Assembly (NCBI GenBank): GCA_010909165.1
Contig: VJWM01000390.1
Location: 1 to 23,995, forward strand
DNA length: 23,995 bases
Origin: Anthoceros angustus
Taxonomy: Eukaryota; Plantae; Anthocerotophyta
Direction: 5' to 3'
Below the pieces are notes generated by a model. The model had not been told where the DNA came from and ran no database searches. It was given only the letters and a program-made list of their open reading frames with translations. Made by a program: the position numbers and the translations under genes. Shown one piece after another: positions 5,149 to 22,000 of this stretch (position 1 is the first letter of the stretch; each line of letters opens with the position of its first letter).

Positions 5149-8100
5149 ATGATTCGAAAATTGCATGTCTTGGTTGTGTTTCTTGGATTTCTGGGGCAAT
5201 ATGCAAGCGCGCAGGCGGAATTGAAGAACATTACACCATTGAGTCCAAATGCAGCTGCAATCGAACGCTACGGCGAGGTACCAGTGAGTTATTTCACGGT
5301 ATCCCAAACATTTCGATACCGCTTTATACGGTGAGTGGACGTTCCCTTCAGTTGCCGCTCAGTTTATCGTACCATGCCGGCGGCAACAAAGTTGAGGACA
5401 ATGCCTCATGGGTAGGACTTGGCTGGTCGCTCAATTCATTGCCGGTGATTAATCGGTCTATCCGCGGGCTTGCAGATGAGGGAGTAGGTGGGTTTTCTCT
5501 GGAAGTCCGGTAAAACAAGTTTACGATAATCGATTTACGACAAGTGGACAAAGTGACTACAATAACTTTCTATGGGACGTTCGTAACGGTAATGTGGATC
5601 CGGAAGCGGACATACATATAGTCTACTTGGAAAAGCGGGAAGTTCTTTTTCAATCAATCCACTCAGAACTTTCAAACTACACCATATGATAATATCAAAA
5701 TAGAATGGCTAGGAAATGGCTTTAGAATAACAAACGATGATGGCGTTGTCTACAATTTCACTATTTCCGAATCGACAGTCAATAATTCAAATTTAAGTGA
5801 GTCGATTGGGTCTTGGTGGGTAACGAAAATCATTAACGCTAATAAAACCGATAGCATTCTTATAGATTATAACATTGAGGTGGAGTCTTACACCACTGTC
5901 CCCTCAGTTACCAAAGTATTTTTATCAGTGGTGATGGTAATTGTGTCCCAAATCCGAATACACTAGCCTACCAAGCAGTTGTATCAAATTTATCCGTTTC
6001 ATCCGTCAAACCCAATCGAATAACCTTTCATAACGGCTATGTTCAGTTCGTGCCGCAAACAACTGTGCGACCCGACCTAACCGGAAGTCACGCGCTAGAT
6101 CGGGTAGACATCTTTAATTACCGAAATGAACTGGTGAAACGATTAAAACTCTTGAAACGGTTGATGGTGGTTGCGGTACCGCGGACTGCAAGCGGATTTT
6201 CCTGAAATCCGTGGAACAGCATGATCCGGTAGGTATCGTTGGCGCCGTGTATTCTTTGCAATATGAGGACGGTATCGCTGTTCCAAGTAGGCTGTCTAAA
6301 GCGCAAGATTATTGGGGATACCATAATGGCCAAAATCAAAACCAAGACTTGGTACCGAGCATATTTTATCAATATTCCGGCACTGACAAACGCAAGCTAC
6401 GAGCAGATAGGAGTGTGAATCCTCAATTTACCCAATGGGGTGTTTTGAAGCGTCTAACCTATCCGACCGGGGTGCCACTTTGTTTGAGTATGAGAACAAC
6501 TGGGTCAGCGACTCGTCGCTTCCCATTAAGACAAGGATACTTCTGATTTATTACAATGGGGTGAGTCAAGGTAGTCACGCTGTATATGAACGATACTTTA
6601 CAGTGGATGTGCCGCTGATCCCGATATAAACGATAATCAAGGGAGCTTATGCTGATATTCAAATCAGCAACATCGGATGCGACTTGAGTGGGGAGCCAAT
6701 CTCTGCGCCAACCATCACAGTGGGTACGAACTATGGTTCTGGGTCCATTTTGGGAAATATATCAGGTCTGTATATTCCTAATGGTACGTACAAGATGACA
6801 GCTGAGTTCAATCAAGATCCGGCTGCGTACACCTATTTTAATTTTTGGTTTCTTGGAAAAAGCCGATAGTGCTTATGTCTCCAATCGTCTTGCGGGTGGG
6901 CTGAGGATAAAGAAGATAACGAATTTGGACAATGTGACGGACGTAAATTCCGTCCAGAGTTCAAATATGTAGAGGATCCGGTATCTAATGTGTCATCCGG
7001 AAAGGTACTCGGAGCCGCGTATTTCAACTTCGCTGAGCATTTTATGTATAAAAGTATGAATTGGTACAGATGGGTTCCTCAGAGTAGTAATAGTCTGTAA
7101 CTCCCAATGGCTACGACGCACGTCGACTTCTAATATTACTACAGTAAATTCCTCTGGAAGTTTTGTTGGTTATCGGATGGTTGAAGTGCTACAGGGTATT
7201 GGAGGAGTCAACGGAAGTCGCGTTTCGAGTTTATGCTAAATAAAGACCAAGTTAGTACTTCGTTTCCTTATCCACCCCGCATTCTCGTGAGCAAAGAAGG
7301 GACAGCTACTGATGCAATCCGACTTTCGAAAAGCTGGCTCTGCGTTTATCCCAGTACGGCGGCTAACTAACTCTTACGCACTGCATTATAACTCTGTTAT
7401 CGGTGCACCTTCCTATGGTTTGAAGATAGCAACGAAGGATATTTATGGCAAAATAGGATTTTCCCGCAGCAATTGGCTTACCTCAATGATGTGCCTGTAC
7501 AGTATGTTTCGGAATATGACACGCAGACTGATTTGTCCTTGCTAAAACTTACGAAAAGGTCTATAGTTCATCAGATACAAATTCTGTATTGATAACCACT
7601 AAAGAATATACCTATCAAAGTCCAACGGCGTATTTGAGCCGAGGCTAAAGCCTATCAGAGTAATGGGAAGATTACAACAACTGATTATTTCTATCCAAGC
7701 GATTTGGCTTTAACTGGTGACGCGGAAGTGGCCGGGCTGAAGTTGGTTACTAAAAATCAGTTGTCAGAGGCGATTCGCACAGTAGATAAGGTAGGCACTA
7801 CACAGATAAAGGCCCTGCAGAAAGATTTTAAAGCACTTACGTCCACCCAGGTTGAGCCGGTGAGCATTCAGGTGCAAACGGAAAGTGGCCCCAATGAGGT
7901 GCGTGTCCAATTCAGGCTTCGATCAAAGCGGTAATCTTCAAGAGCAATATAAATCAGGAGACATTCACCAATCTTATATCTACGATTACAATCGTTCCTA
8001 TCCGATCGCCGAGGTTTTAAATGCAGATAGCTCTTCAGTTGCCTATACATCTTTCGAGGCGGAAGGAAACGGAGGCTGGTAGAATTCCGCCCGCAAATGT

Positions 8101-9086
8101 CCAGTACTTTGGTGGCGTCGCAGGAAGCAGATTTTCATTGGTAATAGCTTCTCAATAAGCAAATCTTCTTTAAGCGCTTCGACAACGTATGTTGTTAGCT
8201 ACTGGACGAAGAACCCGGCTGCATATTCGGTTAGTGGCACAATGTCCGGTTGGCCTAAGTTATTGAATTCAGTTTGCGGTTGGAGGATACTTGGCGCCTG
8301 TTTGAGCATCAGGTAGTTGGGCAAACTACAATTTCAGTGACCGGGTCAGGTTCACTTGATGAGTTGCAGCTCTTCCCAAAAGGAGCCATGATGACTACGT
8401 ATGCTTTTCAGCCGTTGGTGGGTATGACCGTTCAGGTGGACCCGAAAATCAAATTTCTTATTTTACTTACGACGGATTTGGTCGATTATTGTTGATAAAG
8501 GATCAGAAAGGAAATATACTGAAGAAAAACTGCTATGGTTATGCAGGCCAGCAGGCAAGCTGTGAATTGGTCGGTAATGCGGCACAGTCTCAGTCGTTCT
8601 CTAGTACTTGTCCAGCAGGATTTGCTGGTGGCGGTGCAGTATTCGGTCCCTGCGAATACATATTATGCAGCTACACAAGCAGAGGCAAATCTTCGAGCCC
8701 AGCTGATTTGAATGCTAATGGGCAATCGTACGCAAACTCCCATGCGACATGTGCCGACCTCGATATATGCGCGGCTGTCGTTGGAGAATATGGCTTTCAA
8801 CGGGTCCACAACAACAGCAGACGTAGTCGTGCGTTTCTATTCGGATGCAGCCGGAACTAATCCCATTAGTGTTAGTGGTTTGTCTTTGAGTTATCAAAGT
8901 GCCAATTCTTGCGGAGGAACCAATAATTATGGGCAGTCTTGTACGGGTTCTAGTAAGATACTTATAAGCGGAGCGACTGTCTCATATGACGATTATACAT
9001 TTGACGAGTGGAACAATATGGTGGTGACCACGTGCACCATTAATTACCAACTTAATTCTTCTCAAAACTACACCATTATTAACTAG
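5149..9086 (+). CDS. Large secreted YD/RHS-associated protein with TcB/SpvB-like N-terminus and C-terminal DUF5977
   Basis: Signal peptide MIRKLHVLVVFLGFLGQYASA/Q; PLSPNAAAIERYGEVPVSYFTGIPNISIPLY...LPLSLSYHAGG...VGLGWSL; LKRLTYPTG; TTYAFQPLVGMT...YDGFGRLLLIKDQKGNILKK; DUF5977-type ...ADLNANGQSYANSHATC; terminal beta-rich domain ending NYTIIN*. Confidence 0.75.
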
Positions 9087-9093
9087 ACTTACC

Positions 9094-9487
9094 ATGTATC
9101 GAGTTATAGCACTCTTACTTGGAATTATTTCCATTTCAGTCCCCTTGTCTGCTAAGTCCCAAAGTCAAGCTGCAGCCGGGCAAATAGGAGTCGCAACTGT
9201 TATCGAAGGAATTGACGTTGGATAGTTCACAAAGAGAAGCGGTCAAGACTAGAGCTTTAATTTACTATCAGCGGGTAGATTCCGTAAATAGTCAAATTGC
9301 GGACACGGCTATGAGGCGCCAGTTGCTTAGGTCCTCATTACAGCACTATCGTATGCAATTGCAAAACGTGTTGACTGAATCCCAGTTCACGGCTTATCGC
9401 GCCTTTATTCTTCAACGGAAGGAGTTGACAAGACAGCGACTGATGCAGCAAGGTGTACCCATTTCGGAACTTCCTGATGACTTCTAA
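9094..9487 (+). CDS. Small secreted helical protein
   Basis: Signal-like MYRVIALLLGIISISVPLSAKS/Q; one indel joins it to track ORF 9212..9487 (LTLDSSQREAVK...LQNVLTESQFTAY). Confidence 0.7.
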
Positions 9488-9495
9488 CTCATAGT

Positions 9496-12400
9496 ATGAA
9501 ATCAAAATATTTATGCCTCCGTTGGCCATTGCTGCCCATGTTGATGCTCTGTTGGACATGTGCTTTAGCGCAGCATCCATCGAGCTATCCTTCCTATGTG
9601 CAGGTCAATTTTGTGCGTAGCTGGGATAGCAAAGCTCCGCAGACAGACCCCAATAAAATTGTTTCACAGGCATCAATCGATAGTTTTTGATCACTACCCA
9701 ATATATAGACGGATTGGGTCGGCCGGTCCAAACAGTAGCTCGTCAGGCTACACCTCTGGGCCAAGACTTGGTGACGGCCATTGTCTGACGCCTTCGGGCG
9801 GGAAGCCCAAAAGTACTTACCCTTTGCAGCTAATGGCGCAGGGGTAATGCTTCGCTTGCTGATGGTACCTTTAAATTAAACCCTTCCAGCAGGCCGAAGC
9901 TTTTGCCACTACGCAGTACCGGGAGAGCCACATATATGGAAAGACACTGTTTGAGGCCTCGCCCGAGTCGGCCGCTGACTGTTTATGCGCCGGGCGATAA
10001 TTGGGCTGGAGTGAACAGAGGTGTCTCCAGGCTTATTTGATAAACACGGCTGCCGATGAGGTTCGGATCTGGAATGCGGGTTTGCAGGCATCCGACGTGC
10101 CAACGACAACAGCGATATATCCGGCAGGAGCATTGTACAAAAGTCTTGCAACGGATGAGTCGGGAAACGCCGTTATTGAGTATAAGGACAAGTCGGGTCA
10201 GGTAGTGCTGAAGAAAGTACAGGTGGGAGCGACGCCATCGGAAGGACATGGGGCTGGGCATGTACGTACTATATATATGATGATCTGGGCCGGCTTCGGT
10301 TTGTGCTGCAACCCAAAGCCGTTGAGATGTTAGTCAGTAGCAGAAGCTGGACGATCACTAGTGATATCCGCAATGGACTATGTTTTTACTATGGCTACGA
10401 TAGTAGGGGCGTATGACGATCAAAAAGTGCCTGATGCCGGCGAGGTATATATGGTTTATGACGCCCGCGACCGGCTGGTTTTAAGCCGGGATGCCAAGTT
10501 AAGGGTAGATGGAAAATGGATGGTAACCCTGTATGACGGGTTGAACCGACCCATAATGACAGGCCTTGCTGCCTCAGCCAGCCTCGGCTCCAAAACCTTC
10601 GGCCAGCATCTGATCGATGCCGCAGGTTCTTCGGCCTATCCCTTTACGGCTAGCAACGTGCCGTCGTCTGGCTGGGAAGAGCTGACCCAGACGGGCTACG
10701 ATGATTATGCGGGTGCCCGTCCGGTGCGCCGAGCTCGGTCTTCGGACACGACGCAGGTCACGAGCGCGAACTTTTTACCAACCACAATGCGGCTCCTTTT
10801 TTGTCCCCATGCGGTGGAGGCCAGCGCATGTACCCGCGGCCTGCCTACGGGCCGCGTAAAGGTCTTACTACTACCTCCACCTATCTGTATACCACCGATC
10901 TATGACGAAAGGGGCGAGAGATCCGGTAAAAGCACCAATATCACTGGTGGCACCGATGAGCTCACCCAGCAGTATGACTTTACCGGTAAGGTTCTCCGGA
11001 CCCACGGCGCACCCGGGGCGGTGGCACCCCAGAGACCTACCAGACCGGCGCGCAGTCACTATGATCCGGTGGGCCGGCCTACGGATCGCACGCCGGGTCA
11101 CGGGTGGCGGTATTACCGATACCACTTCGAAAGTCACTGTTGCGATGGCGTATGATGAGTTGGGACAATTGAAGCTCAAAAGCTGGCGCCATACTTTGTA
11201 ACGGGCCGGTCTGGAATCCTTGACCTACGAGTACAACATCCGGGGCTGGTTGTTGGGTATGAACCGCGCGTATGCCAAATCAGCTTCTTCGACCACCAAC
11301 TATTTTGGTTTTGAGCTGGGCTATGACAAAGCCTCAATCACCCCTTCAGGCGGTTCGTCCATCGGAAACTTCACCACACCGCAGTACAATGGCAATATTG
11401 CGGGGCGGTTTGGAAGTCAACCGGCGACGATCAGATTAGAAAATACGACTATACCTACGACCGGATGAACCGGCTTACCGGGGATTTAACCAGTTTACCG
11501 GTTCGGGGTTCAATAAAGATGCGGGCACGGACTTCAGTGTAAGTGGGGAACAGGGGCAAATTACTTACGATATCAACGGCAATATCCTGCGGATGAAGCA
11601 AATGGGCTGGAAAATAGCGGGTGGCACCGTGCCGATGGATATATGCTGTACGAATATGTACCCAACTCCAACCAGCTGAAATCCGTGACGGAGGCTTCCG
11701 GAAGCATCAGAGTACAAAATGGGTGATTTTACCGATAAATACACCGGAACCGATGGTGATTATGTCTATGACGTCAACGGCAGCATGACCGTGGATCGAA
11801 ACAAGAACATCAGTAGCATTGCTTATAATCACCTGAATCTGCCTTCGCAAATTGAGGTGACGGGCAAAGGAACGATCACCTACCTATGATGCGGCCAGCA
11901 CCAAACTTCGTAAGACGGTGGTAGAGGGCACTACGACCACCACCACCACTATATAGGCGGGTTTATGTACGAGGAAAAAGGCACCTCGGGTCCCGTTTTT
12001 ACAGTCCTTCGGTCATGAAGAAGGCCGGGTGCGGCCGCGTAGTCCTGCTACTGGTCAACTCACGGGTTTTGCCTATGACTACTTCGTAAAAGATCACACA
12101 GGTAATGTACGGATGACGCTGACCGACGAGCAGAAAACCGATACCTACAGCCACGATGGAAGAAAGTGCGGTGCGGTCGAAAATGCGCTCTTTGCCAATG
12201 TAGACCTCACCCGAGACGGTATCCCAATGGTTACGTTGCAGATACGGACGGCGAGTGGTTCAAAAGTCTCCAAACTTAATGGCTCTGGTCATAAAGTAGG
12301 GCCTGCTGTACTTCTCAAGGTCATGGCCGGTGATATCGTTAATATGCGGGCCTACAGCTGGTATACAACGCCTTCTCAAACGTTCGACCAGCCGGTCTCG

Positions 12401-13773
12401 CCGTTACAGGACCTGCTCAGCTTGCTAAATACGTCCGTTAGTTCGGCTTCAGGCGGTAAAAGCAACCGTTGCCGATCTGGCCAGTGGCGGCAATCTGCTG
12501 ACTGGGCCTATAACAACGTTCCTGTCCGGCAACCGACTCCCGCCTCGACTCCGAAAGCTTATATGGCTCCTCGATGAGCAGTTCAAGCTTGTACAAGACG
12601 GTCCGTCCAGTTCCTCGCCTGTTGGTGCAGCAGGATCAACCACCCATCAGGTGAATGGTGTTACCATGCCCAAATCCGGATACCTGTACGTGTACGGCCA
12701 ACGAAACCCCGGTCAGGACGTATTTTTGACAACTTGCAGGTAGACCATATCCGTGGGCCAATTATTGATGAAACTCACTATTATCCTTTCGGGTTACCAA
12801 TGGCAGGATAAGTTCTAAAGCGGCGGGAAATTTAGAGAACAAACTAAAATATATTGGAAAAGAGGAACAGCGGCAGGAGTTTAGCGATGGCAGTGGGTTG
12901 GAGTGGCTGGATTATGGCGCACGGATGTATGACAACCAGATAGGAAGATGGATGGTATTAGACTCAAAAAGCGAAGCCTATTATTCGAGTTCTCCTTTCA
13001 ATTATGCCCTGAATAACCCGATAGCAAACTTTGACCCTAATGGCAAATGGTCTGTATCACGTCACCACACTATGACGGTAATGGCCTTATCTTCCGCTGG
13101 TATTGGCGTGGTACACAAGCTTATTGGATTGCTCACTATAGTGCAGTCTATGCAGATAATCCCGGAAATCATTTAATGCTTAACAATCTTGTTCATCCTA
13201 CAAGAGGAGACATTTATCGCAGGAAATAGATTACTCTTTACAAAGAACTCCCAAGTAACCGATTATCCCAATTATCATGGTTATAATTTCAATGTTTGGC
13301 ATTCAATGCGTTCCCCACAGGAAAAACAAAGGTTCGAGAGCGGAACAATAGGTGGAATATCTGCGGAAGGGGCGATGCAAAGGGCATGGAGTTCGGATGG
13401 GGTGAGGTATTTTCAGCAGCTAAATCTGGTACTAAACTGGCTGATCTTAAAAGAATACTTGGCAAATCCAATCTTTGGGACAAGGTTTGCATGCTCTTCA
13501 GGATGCCTATGCGCATCATGGCGGCATGACGTTGGGTTCGACCATGTGTACACCGATATATTTACAAGCAATAGAAAAGCGGAGGCGATTACAAGTTCTG
13601 CAGTTGCTGTTTATGCTCTTTTGACTAAAGACTATTCAGCAATAGATAAGATGATGGAAGCAAATAAAGGTAGCCTTGGATTTATATCAACTGAAGGGAT
13701 GTCCACGCAGCAAATAACTCAAATCTTTACAGCTATTCAAAATTACCTAACAGACCATAAGCCAAAGCGTTAA
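9496..13773 (+). CDS. DUF6443 / RHS repeat-associated core polymorphic toxin
   Basis: Signal peptide ...WTCALA/Q; DUF6443 (VNFVRSWD...[13 protein letters not shown]...YDAFGRE); YD repeats ([32 protein letters not shown]); KDHTGNVRM; core ETHYYPFG...[16 protein letters not shown]...[17 protein letters not shown]; ~240 aa C-terminal toxin domain. Confidence 0.9.
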
Positions 13774-14158
13774 TGAATAAAAACTCCTATTCTACATATA
13801 TGCTGGCTGCCTTGTTGGTGTCGGAGTGTTTCTGTTTGTATTGTACGGCGCTTGGGGCACGATTTTAATTTTGAGGAAGCTGCATCTTTAGAATACTTTC
13901 TATTTTCTGCTTCTTTTCTAATAACAAGTCTGCTACTTCTAATCACAAGCTTTTTGCCGAGGTGGAAAGCGGTTTATGTGGTTATGAAATTTTTTTGTTT
14001 CTTATTTTTGTCTTTTGTTATTCCTATTAGGAAAACTTTTTATTTTCTTTTTGAGAAAGGCGGCACTTGGCCTGTTCTGGTTGTACTAAGCATTTTACTA
14101 TTACTGATGTATCAAACAACCCGGTATTTTTTTCAAAAGAGTTTTGGCCTCAGAATAA
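13773..14158 (+). CDS. Putative immunity protein, multi-pass membrane
   Basis: ATG overlaps the toxin stop (TAATG 13771-13775); very AT-rich; about four hydrophobic segments. The track ORF runs to 14199 through the terminator, so a stop at 14156-14158 after an indel is more likely. Confidence 0.7.
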
Positions 14159-14159
14159 C

Positions 14160-14188
14160 AAAGCCGCTCAGTGAGCGGCTTCTTTTTA
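14160..14188. terminator. Bidirectional intrinsic terminator
   Basis: AAGCCGCTCA-G-TGAGCGGCTT (14161-14181) with T-rich tails on both strands, between convergent stops. Confidence 0.8.
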
Positions 14189-14312
14189 TGGCGCAATGAG
14201 GTTTTGCAGGTTGTCCTTTAGTTTTTGTTGGAGATGGCCATATCAATCATGGTAAAGATGGCCTGTTGTTCGGTTTTGCCTAAAGTGTCAATCATTTTAA
14301 TTTTTCCAGCGT
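14186..14312 (-). pseudogene. C-terminal remnant of an XRE-type regulator, cut at module M2
   Basis: TLEKLKMIDTLGKTEQQAIFTMIDMAISNK(K)LKDNLQNLIAP* resembles the C-terminal helices of Bacteroidota XRE proteins as I recall them. No HTH part is present. Confidence 0.6.
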
Positions 14313-19051: not shown

Positions 19052-22000
19052 TCATTTATCTTGTGCTATGGGTAAATAAACTTTAAATGTTGCTCCTTCA
19101 CCGGTTTTCCTTCAGCCTCAATTTTCCCGCCATGACGTTCAGCAATTTTTTGTAAAGAGAAAGGCCGAGGCCCGATCCTCATATTCATCTTTTGAATGCA
19201 GGCGCATAAAGGTTTGAAAAATAAAGTCTGCCTTGTTTTTATCAAAACCAATTCCATTGTCCTGAACCGTTATCAAAGCAAATTGCTTGCCGGTGTTACC
19301 ATCATTTTCCAAGACAACCTCACCAGTTATAATAATGACCGGCGGTACATTTTCTTAGAAAACTTTAATGCATTATTGATGAGGTTGTAAAATAGCTGGT
19401 GAAGCAATCGAGGCACCTTCCACGGTCGGCAAATTGTTGTACTTGATTACTGCCTTTTTTGAGCAATGGTAATTTCAAGGTCTGTCTCCACATGCTGAAG
19501 CACGCCTGAGAGGTGAACGGCTTCAGTTAGCAACGATTTCTTAGCATCGAGAGCTGAATACTCAAAACCCCATCAATCATATCGTAACTGCGGGTGGGTG
19601 GCAGCCCTGTCAATCTTCGATACATATAGTTTTGCCTTTTCTGGCAGGGCCGCTGAAAACTCATGCTCCGTGCGGCTGACGAATGTTTTATCTTACGTAC
19701 AGGCTCTTTCAAATCGTGTGAAGCCACATGAGCAAAATGTTGCAAATCTTCGTTGCTACGCTGCAACTCTTTGGTGCGTTCAGCAACCAACTCTTCTAAT
19801 CGTTCTGCTACGTTCTTTTGGTCATGTATGCGTCAAGTGCCAAACCACCGTATAATCTCATTGGCCTCATTGCGAAAAGGTGTGGCTCTTGCCAACAGCC
19901 AACGCAGTATTGCCCATCACTCCGGCGCATACGGTATTCTATCTCATAATAGTCCCGGTGTCGTGGGAATGTTCAAACTTTCCATGTACGGTCATAATCA
20001 TCCGGTGCAGTAATTTAGACCATCCTCGGCCTTCGTTTCTTCATACGTCATGCCGGTGAATTCAAACCAACGCTGGTTGTAAAATCATGGTAGCCATCCG
20101 GCTTTGCCCACACCATTTGCGGCATAAAGTCGGCGAGTTGCCGAAGTTGTTCTTCGCTCTGCCTTAATGCCTGTTCTGCCTCCCGTTCTTTTGTTGTATC
20201 CGACATAACGCCGATAAAACGGTGTTTCTCACCACGATTGTTAGGTGCACCGGCCAATAGAACGAACCCAGCGAACAAGGCCGCCATCTATTATGCGAAA
20301 CTCGGCGTGATAGCTTGTGAGCTATCACTGTCAAACAGTAGTTTTGCAGTTCATTTCTCCACCGTGCTCTGTCATCGGGATGGATAGAAGATAAAAATCG
20401 TTCAAACGTAAAATCTTCATCAGGGCTCGTTTTCAAATCTGGAGCGGTTAGATATGACAGTCTTGTCTGTTTGGATATTGTAATCCCATAACCCAAAGCT
20501 TGCTGCATCAATGGCTGTGCTGAGCTGCTACTTTCCTGCAGGGCATTTTCCGCTTTTACGCTGGCTAATGTCCTGCAGAGCCCAACATGCGAGTGGATTT
20601 GCTCGGCATTGTGCAGAACAAAGCCACGATCAAATATCTGTTTATACGACCCGTTGCGGCATCGAAACTGGTATTCTTCTGTCCGTATCTCCGCCTCGTC
20701 AATAACTTTATGAATGCCGTACCACCCGCTCCCGGTCGTCAGGTGAATACGGTCGTACCACCAACTTGCAGTTTCATCAACTTCATCGTATGCGTAATCG
20801 AACATTTGATAAAGCGCCTCATTCCAAACGATGGTATCTTTTTCCAGTGTCCCAATCCCAAATAGCATCCTGAGTTGCCTTGTTAATTAACTGAAATCGT
20901 TCAATGCTTTCACGCAGTATCTCTTGCCTCTTTTTCTTCGGTTGTTTCTCTTACTTCAATGATGGTTCCTACACCTTTCCTGTCCACTATAATAGGCTTG
21001 CTGTAAAGCCACCGGAAAGAAACTGCCATCTTTACGGACAAATACTTCTTCACTGGTTTGTTTATGGGCAGCAAAGCCCTCTATTGGGCATTCTTCAAGC
21101 GGAAAATGAGTGCCGTCGGATGGGTATGGTGGACGTAATAGTGAAGGGCTTGCCGGTGACTTCCTCTAATTTGAAACCCGTCATTTGTTCTGCCGCCTCG
21201 TTCATGTGTAAACACAATATTGCCGGTCGTCCATCATAAACAAGGCTGACGTCGTATTTTCCGTTACTGTCTCTAAAAGTTGTTTTGGTAGGCGAGTGCC
21301 CTTTCCACTTTAGCGAAGTATCGGTGCAACTGGTAAAAACTTTATTATGGATCCATCCTCATTTACAAGCGGTTCCGAACGGTAAGCAGCCAAAAGGAAT
21401 GGCCGTCTTTTTCGACGTAAAATGCATTACCACTTCGGAAGGTTTGCCGGTGGTGGTGATGGACGAGCAGGTATTTTCAGGAGGTAGCGGGTTGCCATTT
21501 TCATCCGTTATAAGAAAAGTCTCGTCCAGCTTTTTCCGGAAGGTATAAATGTCTTTCTCAGCCAGTACCGCTTCAACGGAATCTAAACCCATTTGCAGTG
21601 CAGCTAATTGGTTCAAGCTAATGATGTTGCCCTTGTTGTCTAACTGGTAGATGGCGGATGGCACATGCTGCAATGTGATTTCCAACCCGGTTTGCAGCTC
21701 GTCCAATTTTTGGTTTACTTTAATGCTATTGGTAATGTCTCTTGATACGGAGATGAGGCGCATATTTTCCGACCCACCCCGTCTCTGGCGTAACCACGAC
21801 ATCCCACCATTTGGGTGTTCCTTTGGCAGTTGGGCAAAAGGCCTGAAAACGGGCCGTTTCACCAGCAGAGGCTGTTTGCACCGATTGTCGTACTATTTCC
21901 TGATATTCCTCGGGCCAGAGTTCCCACCAAAATTTCAGCTTTACAGTTTCTGAGATTTTCGATTTCCAATGTACACCGCCCATTTTCGTTCATGTACAAC

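Follow-up and report, generated by a model that had tools for sequence, protein, structure and literature searches.

A toxin tip of an RHS protein with a putative metal site that self-cleavage may complete, encoded in an Anthoceros angustus assembly

In the usual picture an RHS protein is a cage around a cargo, and the cargo is merely released by self-cleavage. The locus described here raises the question whether the same cut could also finish the active site of the cargo. It lies on contig VJWM01000390.1 of the Anthoceros angustus assembly GCA_010909165.1, of which the whole stretch from position 1 to 23,995 was analysed (forward strand, 23,995 nucleotides, called the window below), and it encodes the C-terminal toxin tip of an RHS gene at 13033-13773. 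The original prediction, made from the letters of the window, held that this tip is a three-zinc domain of the kind found in Het-C, phospholipase C (PLC) and P1 nuclease, and that its first residue, a Trp, would be freed by RHS autocleavage. Every motif named in that prediction was found in its place within 13033-13773. If the idea is true, cleavage does not only release the toxin but also creates a catalytic group, and the producer would gain a further, new means of protecting itself.

The explanation that we consider best, and to which we give as a whole a probability of about 0.5, is that the tip is a metal-dependent phosphodiesterase which acts on a membrane lipid and is completed by self-cleavage. 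The whole gene, with its signal peptide, DUF6443, RHS shell and tip, would come from a Chitinophagaceae-like Bacteroidota bacterium. Self-cleavage one residue past a conserved Gly would leave an aromatic amino acid as residue 1, five residues before an invariant His6, as in P1/S1 nucleases, and the putative site of the most likely phosphodiesterase would consist of five His, three Asp and the new N-terminus. The uncleaved protein would be inactive, and the cut would both release and complete the enzyme. In the target cell it would attack a membrane lipid on the periplasmic side of the inner membrane, and the short periplasmic loop of the immunity protein, with a conserved His, may block the site at the membrane surface.

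The toxin tip and its junction with the RHS protease

The proposal that the domain is an RHS tip was borne out by the core profile TIGR03696 (Rhs_assc_core), which matches window positions 12772-13173 with 45.6 bits against a cut-off of 32.5, by the PxxxxDPxG motif and by the two Asp of the protease. The profile match ends at the Gly of DPNG. The upstream protease Asp is encoded at 12961-63 and the second one at 13033-35, inside P-x-x-x-x-D-P-N-G-K, and both are retained in 182 of the 184 family members with enough upstream sequence. The YD-repeat shell lies upstream in the same gene: between ~5.2 kb and 13.0 kb the tblastn matches to full-length relatives, though in pieces, keep a collinear order. 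These relatives are built from Ig/PKD-like repeats, DUF6443, the RHS_repeat/YD shell, the core and then the toxin tip. The window gene seems to open with a stretch like a signal peptide near 5176-5217, DUF6443 is found at about 9693-10031, upstream of the YD shell and the RHS core tail, and the gene, which spans roughly 5.1-13.8 kb, closes with the 242 codons of the toxin tip. In nearly all loci a small membrane-protein gene, a candidate for the immunity role, overlaps or abuts the toxin stop. We regard it as nearly certain that the window domain is the tip of an RHS protein paired with an immunity gene.

No open frame runs across the domain, and the toxin motifs of 13033-13773 are spread over three reading frames because the window copy carries six frame breaks. 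Alignment to the intact homologues L001, L002 and L003 placed a two-base surplus near 13108 and single-base gaps at the other breaks, near 13222, 13239, 13382, 13448 and 13519. The homologues were taken from genome assemblies, namely metagenome-assembled genomes of a Chitinophagaceae member (L001), a Ferruginibacter (L002) and a member of the Bacteroidota (L003). The window toxin was read with the codons of a homologue as a guide; an X was set wherever a single base is missing, and the two surplus bases were left out. So read, it has 88% identity to L002 and no in-frame stops. Searches and folds were run on intact natural homologues and not on the X-bridged window toxin. The features of the gene, all on the + strand, are as follows.

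5176-13047, +: long RHS-family gene body, collinear in tblastn with the RHS bodies of relatives, frame-hopping and readable only in pieces
12961-13047, +: RHS aspartyl autoprotease tail, placed by TIGR03696 and the Asp pair, with the cut position taken from RhsA and Rhs1
13033-13047, +: D-P-N-G-K, in the position that was predicted
13048-13107, +: toxin piece 1, frame 1, with W1 (13048-50) and H6 (13063-65), followed by the break of two surplus bases near 13108
13110-13221, +: toxin piece 2, frame 3, with YAD and its D36 (13155-57), followed by the breaks near 13222 and 13239
13240-13381, +: toxin piece 3, frame 1, with W84-H85 (13297-13302; H85 at 13300-02), followed by the break near 13382
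13383-13447, +: toxin piece 4, frame 3, with the invariant G-F-G-W region, followed by the break near 13448
13449-13518, +: toxin piece 5, frame 2, with a motif of 13 residues (about 13478-13516) that holds H149 (13490-92), D153 (13502-04) and H157 (13514-16), followed by the break near 13519
13520-13773, +: toxin piece 6, frame 1, with HVYTD (13543-57), which holds H167 (13543-45) and D171 (13555-57), then the C-terminal helices and the stop (13771-73)

The toxin domain is fused to the autoprotease motif with zero linker, and this junction is the firmest finding of the analysis. [DE]-x-x-G-x directly precedes residue 1 in 93 of the 98 representatives that were matched from profile position 1, and the Gly of D-x-x-G stands exactly 7 residues before H6 in 180 of the 183 distinct sequences bearing the motif; elsewhere in the domain the spacing is loose, with 38-72 residues from D36 to H85 and 45-75 from H85 to H149. 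Such a junction, kept without insertion or deletion across sequences of ~30% identity, would be explained by a catalytic group that is created by cleavage. The published RHS cuts fall one residue past the Gly, a fixed four residues after the catalytic Asp (PMC8765631, PMC8636562): in RhsA, with the catalytic D1346, the density ends after W1350 (PMC8765631), and in Rhs1, with the catalytic D1338, the C-terminal fragment begins at A1343 (PMC8636562). By analogy, the scissile bond of the window protein is predicted to follow the K at 13045-47. As the published cut lies one residue past the Gly and the sequences are collinear, the toxin would begin at the aromatic residue. The Trp that was expected there is present in the window copy, but the family as a whole is less strict: residue 1 is W in 82, Y in 77, F in 25, S in 1 and A in 1 of the sequences, and thus aromatic in 184 of 186 (99%). 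Residue 2 is A, T or S with few exceptions, and residue 3 is V, I or L.

One feature of the junction speaks against this placement of the cut. In place of the canonical L/W/F the Gly is followed by a polar residue (K 54, R 33, Q 28, N 21, M 16, E 16, D 12), and therefore the scissile bond could fall one residue later, after the aromatic residue. The predicted self-cleavage one residue past DPxG, giving K/W, thus agrees with the published RHS cut sites, but the polar residue leaves room for a later cut. One could argue that it is the RHS protease, and not the toxin, that needs the rigid junction and the aromatic residue, the latter being the displaced L/W/F of PxxxxDPxG[L/W/F]; the cut would then follow it, the toxin would start at residue 2, and its N-terminus may or may not be a ligand. 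This argument can point to the polar residue at the canonical post-Gly position with an aromatic next to it in 99%, to the last core residue of RhsA, which is a Trp, and to the small residue 2. Two apparently standalone homologues, P0137 and P0158, start with M-A-A-G-x-H, and therefore have their own N-terminus at position 1, or one residue further on, at position 2, if the Met is cleaved off; in the latter case they, as well as YdjM with its M-T-A-E-G-H, would begin where this argument has the toxin begin. However, the TIGR03696 match is gapless and collinear up to the Gly, the published cuts keep their fixed distance of four residues from the catalytic Asp, residues 1-10 are confidently placed in the toxin model, and the preference for W, Y or F parallels the tolerance of PC-PLC for W1F. 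Thus we consider it unlikely that the junction is shaped by the protease in this way.

Because the tip is joined to the cleavage site without a spacer, it is plausible that self-cleavage switches the toxin on. The narrower proposal, that the new N-terminus is a metal ligand through its free alpha-amino group and that cleavage activates the enzyme for this reason, finds its support among these sequences in the fixed register of the junction; it is tentative and in our judgement falls somewhat short of even odds. The analogy is drawn because in Listeria PC-PLC the W1F mutant is active, other substitutions of W1 are inactive and one added N-terminal residue abolishes activity (PMC10576769), and because the N-terminal Trp of mature S1 nuclease binds zinc through its main chain (PMC5201275).

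The intact references have a shorter arrangement. There the toxin-immunity pair (L002:2224-3647, L001:2122-3650, L003:2254-3650) is headed by a short open reading frame that consists of the RHS tail and the tip (373 amino acids in L001, 339 in L002 and 329 in L003); in the window, unlike in these three, the tip is joined to a full-length RHS body. The genes upstream of the pair in the fetched flank of L002 lie on the opposite strand and include no shell gene, which gives this locus the look of an orphan cassette.

The toxin family, its putative metal site and its kin

The family is small: a word search found 26 relatives and a metagenome scan found 64 loci at 30-88% identity, and profile A2, built from 40 toxin-only sequences, collected only 229 cluster representatives among 1.84 billion proteins. 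The relatives come from Chitinophagaceae, Ferruginibacter and other Bacteroidota, and the named records are confined to Bacteroidota; the named members are from Chryseobacterium, Flavobacterium, Emticicia and Candidatus Kapaibacterium, and NCBI labels them only as 'RHS repeat-associated core domain-containing protein'. In a tblastn search of 72,556 plasmids three chance matches were all that appeared. Several members have architectures of their own. The standalone P0137 and P0158 (239-242 amino acids, singleton clusters) keep the His/Asp set. P0076 (568 amino acids) has a signal peptide, then a region of ~300 amino acids without assignment and then the domain, with no RHS motif. P0026 (363 amino acids) has a signal peptide and an RHS tail without a shell before the domain, and P0094 (282 amino acids) has a signal-peptide-like start and an off-register P-D-G-T-K junction.

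The domain has 220-250 amino acids and is all-helical in the AlphaFold models of L002 (pLDDT 84.9, pTM 0.87) and L008 (pLDDT 94.0, pTM 0.92, with a mean pLDDT of 95 for residues 1-10). H6, D36, H85, H149, D153, H157 and D171 are invariant in the 40 sequences of A2, the identity of which goes down to 32%, and so are P38, T65, S68, Q69, G113, G117, W118, G145, G147, L151, Q152 and G218; judged from the alignment, conservation of the motifs is far beyond chance. Between H157 and D171, 39-40 of the 40 sequences have one more His, the fifth. In the L002 model H149, D153 and H157 lie within helix 139-156 or at its end. Together, these residues give nine putative metal-binding positions in a conserved order, the N-terminal aromatic residue, five His and three Asp. 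The ligand order that had been proposed from P1 nuclease is thus recovered in the sequences: S1/P1 enzymes use one Trp, three Asp and five His (PMC4144908), and the family has one N-terminal aromatic residue, five His and three Asp in the same order.

The Pfam matches among the 40 members are all sub-threshold, with DUF6765 matched in 26, VWA7_N in 4, Het-C in 2 and Zn_dep_PLPC in 1. DUF6765 (PF20551) reaches 26.2 and 25.3 bits at best against a cut-off of 26.6 (best E 7.6e-6), and its alignment, which stops after the first ~155 of the 325 positions of the profile, pairs residue 6 with profile position 6 and keeps this register as far as H157; one family member carries a precomputed PF20551 match. 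The Het-C, VWA7_N and Zn_dep_PLPC matches lie over the HxxxDxxxH region (LHxLQDxxAH). The nearest sequence kin therefore appears to be DUF6765, with Het-C, VWA7_N and the zinc PLC family more distant. In this respect the prediction of a Het-C-type LHxLxDxxAH motif holds in part: the motif is present, and DUF6765, VWA7_N, Het-C and Zn_dep_PLPC are matched weakly again and again, but none of them at its cut-off. Het-C (PF07217) stays at 16.4 bits against 21 and Zn_dep_PLPC (PF00882) at 14.8 against 26.8, in one member only. The window's own pieces, searched against Pfam and NCBIfam, gave only a 16.5-bit VWA7_N match and the RHS core.

A number of results weigh against the reading of the tip as a PLC-like enzyme that cleavage completes. 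No Pfam family reaches its cut-off in any member. Foldseek searches of the PDB with the L002 and L008 models returned no PLC, alpha-toxin or S1/P1 structure (best E 0.5-0.7, TM score at most 0.25), although Foldseek is weak on all-helical folds, and its search of the viral library BFVD gave nothing. Searches of the PDB sequences with phmmer, and with hmmsearch from the 40-sequence profile, gave chance matches only, and hhalign of the toxin profile against the YdjM profile, which is narrow and enterobacterial, gave a probability of 0.13. The fifth His is not always in the HxxxD spacing, its distance to D171 being 4-5 residues in some subfamilies and 13-20 in others, and in P0076 the N-terminal part ahead of the domain is not of the RHS kind. 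When the family profile was used in a relaxed word search (E up to 10), family members alone came back, without any DUF6765 or Het-C protein that could have served as a bridge. The kinship of fold with PLC and P1 that had been proposed thus found no match in the PDB, either with the models or with the profiles.

It could be that the tip is a metallo- or phospho-hydrolase of the His/Asp type whose fold has nothing to do with PLC and P1, in which case the ligand order would be convergent or coincidental and the target would be another envelope molecule, e.g. lipid II or undecaprenyl pyrophosphate. Two confident models without a PDB neighbour would agree with this, as would the missing profile link to YdjM. 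The family has the spacing HxxxDxxxH, whereas in PLC and P1 five residues stand before the last His, and a membrane immunity protein would suit any membrane-bound substrate. On the other side, the sub-threshold matches fall only on families that the literature ties to PLC/P1, namely Het-C, Zn_dep_PLPC and VWA7_N, the last being an animal Het-C-like domain (PMC3482391), and the one aromatic residue, five His and three Asp are identical in count and order to those of S1/P1. An unrelated fold is therefore an improbable alternative, but one to be kept in mind. As Foldseek is weak on such folds and the YdjM profile is narrow, we do not file the domain as a member of PLC/P1. It is best described as a Het-C/DUF6765-like His/Asp domain that may work like PLC/P1. 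That it is a metal-dependent hydrolase of the Het-C/DUF6765 kind we hold to be probable; that it has the true PLC/P1 fold is a nearly balanced question, leaning slightly to the negative.

The membrane partner, the target and the state of the window copy

At almost all loci the following gene begins no more than a few bases away from the toxin stop. The proteins encoded there are small, either of 60-70 amino acids with two transmembrane segments or of 115-140 amino acids with four. A [GAS]-x-[GS]-H motif stands right after the first helix in ~24 of 42 distinct partners, and most of the others have a His in the loop. In the partners with two transmembrane segments only a loop of ~10 residues is exposed, and because of the positive residues at the N-terminus of the partner this loop should face the periplasm. 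The intact relatives of the window's own immunity gene have 135 amino acids and 4-5 hydrophobic segments, with A-T-G-H after the first. In the window the pair ends with two features.

13773-14178, +: candidate immunity gene, the start of which overlaps the toxin stop, with ~7 single-base gaps
14161-14190, +: terminator-like hairpin with a T run, which directly follows the immunity gene and closes the toxin-immunity pair

The hairpin is strong and reads as a terminator on both strands. In L050, the locus of a divergent family member, a gene from 2439 onward for a lipoprotein-like protein of 186 amino acids, with a Cys after a hydrophobic leader, takes the place of the small multi-transmembrane partner and may be a second type of immunity protein. 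Just after the immunity gene, L002 (3662-4006, -) and L003 (3664-4011, -) have a convergent gene for a helix-turn-helix (XRE-like) protein of ~114 amino acids.

A partner that is embedded in the membrane, with its loop on the periplasmic side, favours an enzyme acting at the periplasmic surface of the membrane over a nuclease. The target could be a phospholipid or another lipid-linked phosphodiester, for which we see about an even chance. The original prediction had left a nuclease as an option, and here the membrane-embedded immunity proteins argue against it. A P1/S1-like nuclease that degrades nucleic acid in the cytoplasm would have in its favour that the W1-to-H6 spacing and the all-Asp acidic ligands are nearer to P1 nuclease than to PLC. 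However, immunity proteins against nucleases are generally soluble and cytoplasmic, while the partner here is an integral membrane protein that exposes only ~10 loop residues in its smaller form, and the S1/P1 family PF02265 was absent from every Pfam scan of the family. A nuclease is thus very unlikely.

The frame breaks of the toxin are not confined to it. The candidate immunity gene adds its ~7 to them, so that single-base gaps account for 12 of the 13 breaks in the two genes, and no stop-free stretch longer than 273 codons exists on either strand of the whole 24-kb window. The dN/dS (ratio of nonsynonymous to synonymous substitution rates) of the window toxin is 0.03-0.06, the same range as between the intact homologues. 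That the window copy is a decayed pseudogene, and not a mis-sequenced live gene, has the six breaks within 726 bases to its credit and is nevertheless hardly credible, since breaks are just as dense all over the window, on either strand and in genes that have nothing to do with the toxin, nearly all of them in the pair are single-base gaps, nonsense codons are missing and dN/dS is as low as among intact copies; it was rejected on dN/dS and on the window-wide noise. From the sequence, the frame breaks look like sequencing or assembly errors and not like gene decay. The whole window resembles an unpolished, deletion-prone assembly, and therefore no gene in it should be called without a homologue to guide the reading. 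A 240-codon fragment at 20167-20886 (-), which carries a PAS_3 domain (45.5 bits) and is unrelated to the toxin locus, is probably part of a broken sensor gene.

Comparison with known systems

In the literature we found no prior description of this toxin family or of an RHS toxin with a PLC-type tip, none of catalytic N-termini created by cleavage in RHS toxins, and no literature on DUF6765/PF20551. The family has no curated Pfam home and Foldseek gave it no neighbour, and the membrane proteins that partner it are of unusually small size. It would add a new pair of toxin and immunity protein, the target of which is probably a lipid of the envelope. In the boldest form of the reading, RHS self-cleavage would be a built-in zymogen switch that completes a three-metal site by freeing the N-terminus and keeps the toxin chemically inert before release, a membrane micro-protein of 60-140 amino acids with a conserved His in its sole exposed loop would occupy that same metal site and so disarm the enzyme at the membrane surface, and the domain would be a strongly diverged PLC/P1/Het-C member or a new branch without a solved representative. 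Taken with all its parts, this we consider doubtful.

One published parallel is Tox-HET-C. Het-C-like domains in polymorphic toxins were predicted in 2012, with HxxxDxxxH and listed with the type II and type VI secretion systems (T2SS, T6SS) and PVC systems, and with neither RHS repeats nor an immunity protein (PMC3482391, Zhang et al. 2012). Tox-HET-C/Het-C (PF07217) and the window family share the all-helical build, HxxxDxxxH, several conserved His and acidic residues and the polymorphic-toxin context, and Tox-HET-C was likewise predicted to be a metal-dependent lipase or nuclease. The difference is that the window family is fused to RHS and has a membrane immunity partner. YdjM (PF04307) has been tied to alpha-toxin and Het-C by profile comparison (PMC8557891), and it shares with the family a His five residues from the N-terminus, in an invariant M1-T-A-E-G-H6 (L068:15212-15799, E. 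coli K-12 ydjM; alignment A4). The S1/P1 nucleases have the same one N-terminal aromatic residue, five His and three Asp in order, with a His at position 6; they differ in that PF02265 and fold matches are missing here and that a membrane immunity protein argues against a nucleic-acid target.

With the self-cleaving proteins RhsA, Rhs1 and TcC the window family shares PxxxxDPxG, a pair of Asp at a distance of about 24 residues, and the core recognised by TIGR03696. It differs from them in the polar residue after the Gly and in having no linker or pre-toxin segment before the catalytic domain. The zinc PLC enzymes (B. cereus PC-PLC, C. perfringens alpha-toxin, Listeria PC-PLC) are helical too and have the N-terminal aromatic together with a set of His and Asp. 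PLC becomes active once an N-terminal extension has been removed, and it tolerates W1F; a membrane-lipid target fits the immunity proteins found here. Differences lie in the missing Foldseek and PDB-sequence matches and in the processing: PLC is processed by signal peptidase or Mpl, whereas in the window family the RHS autoprotease would do so.
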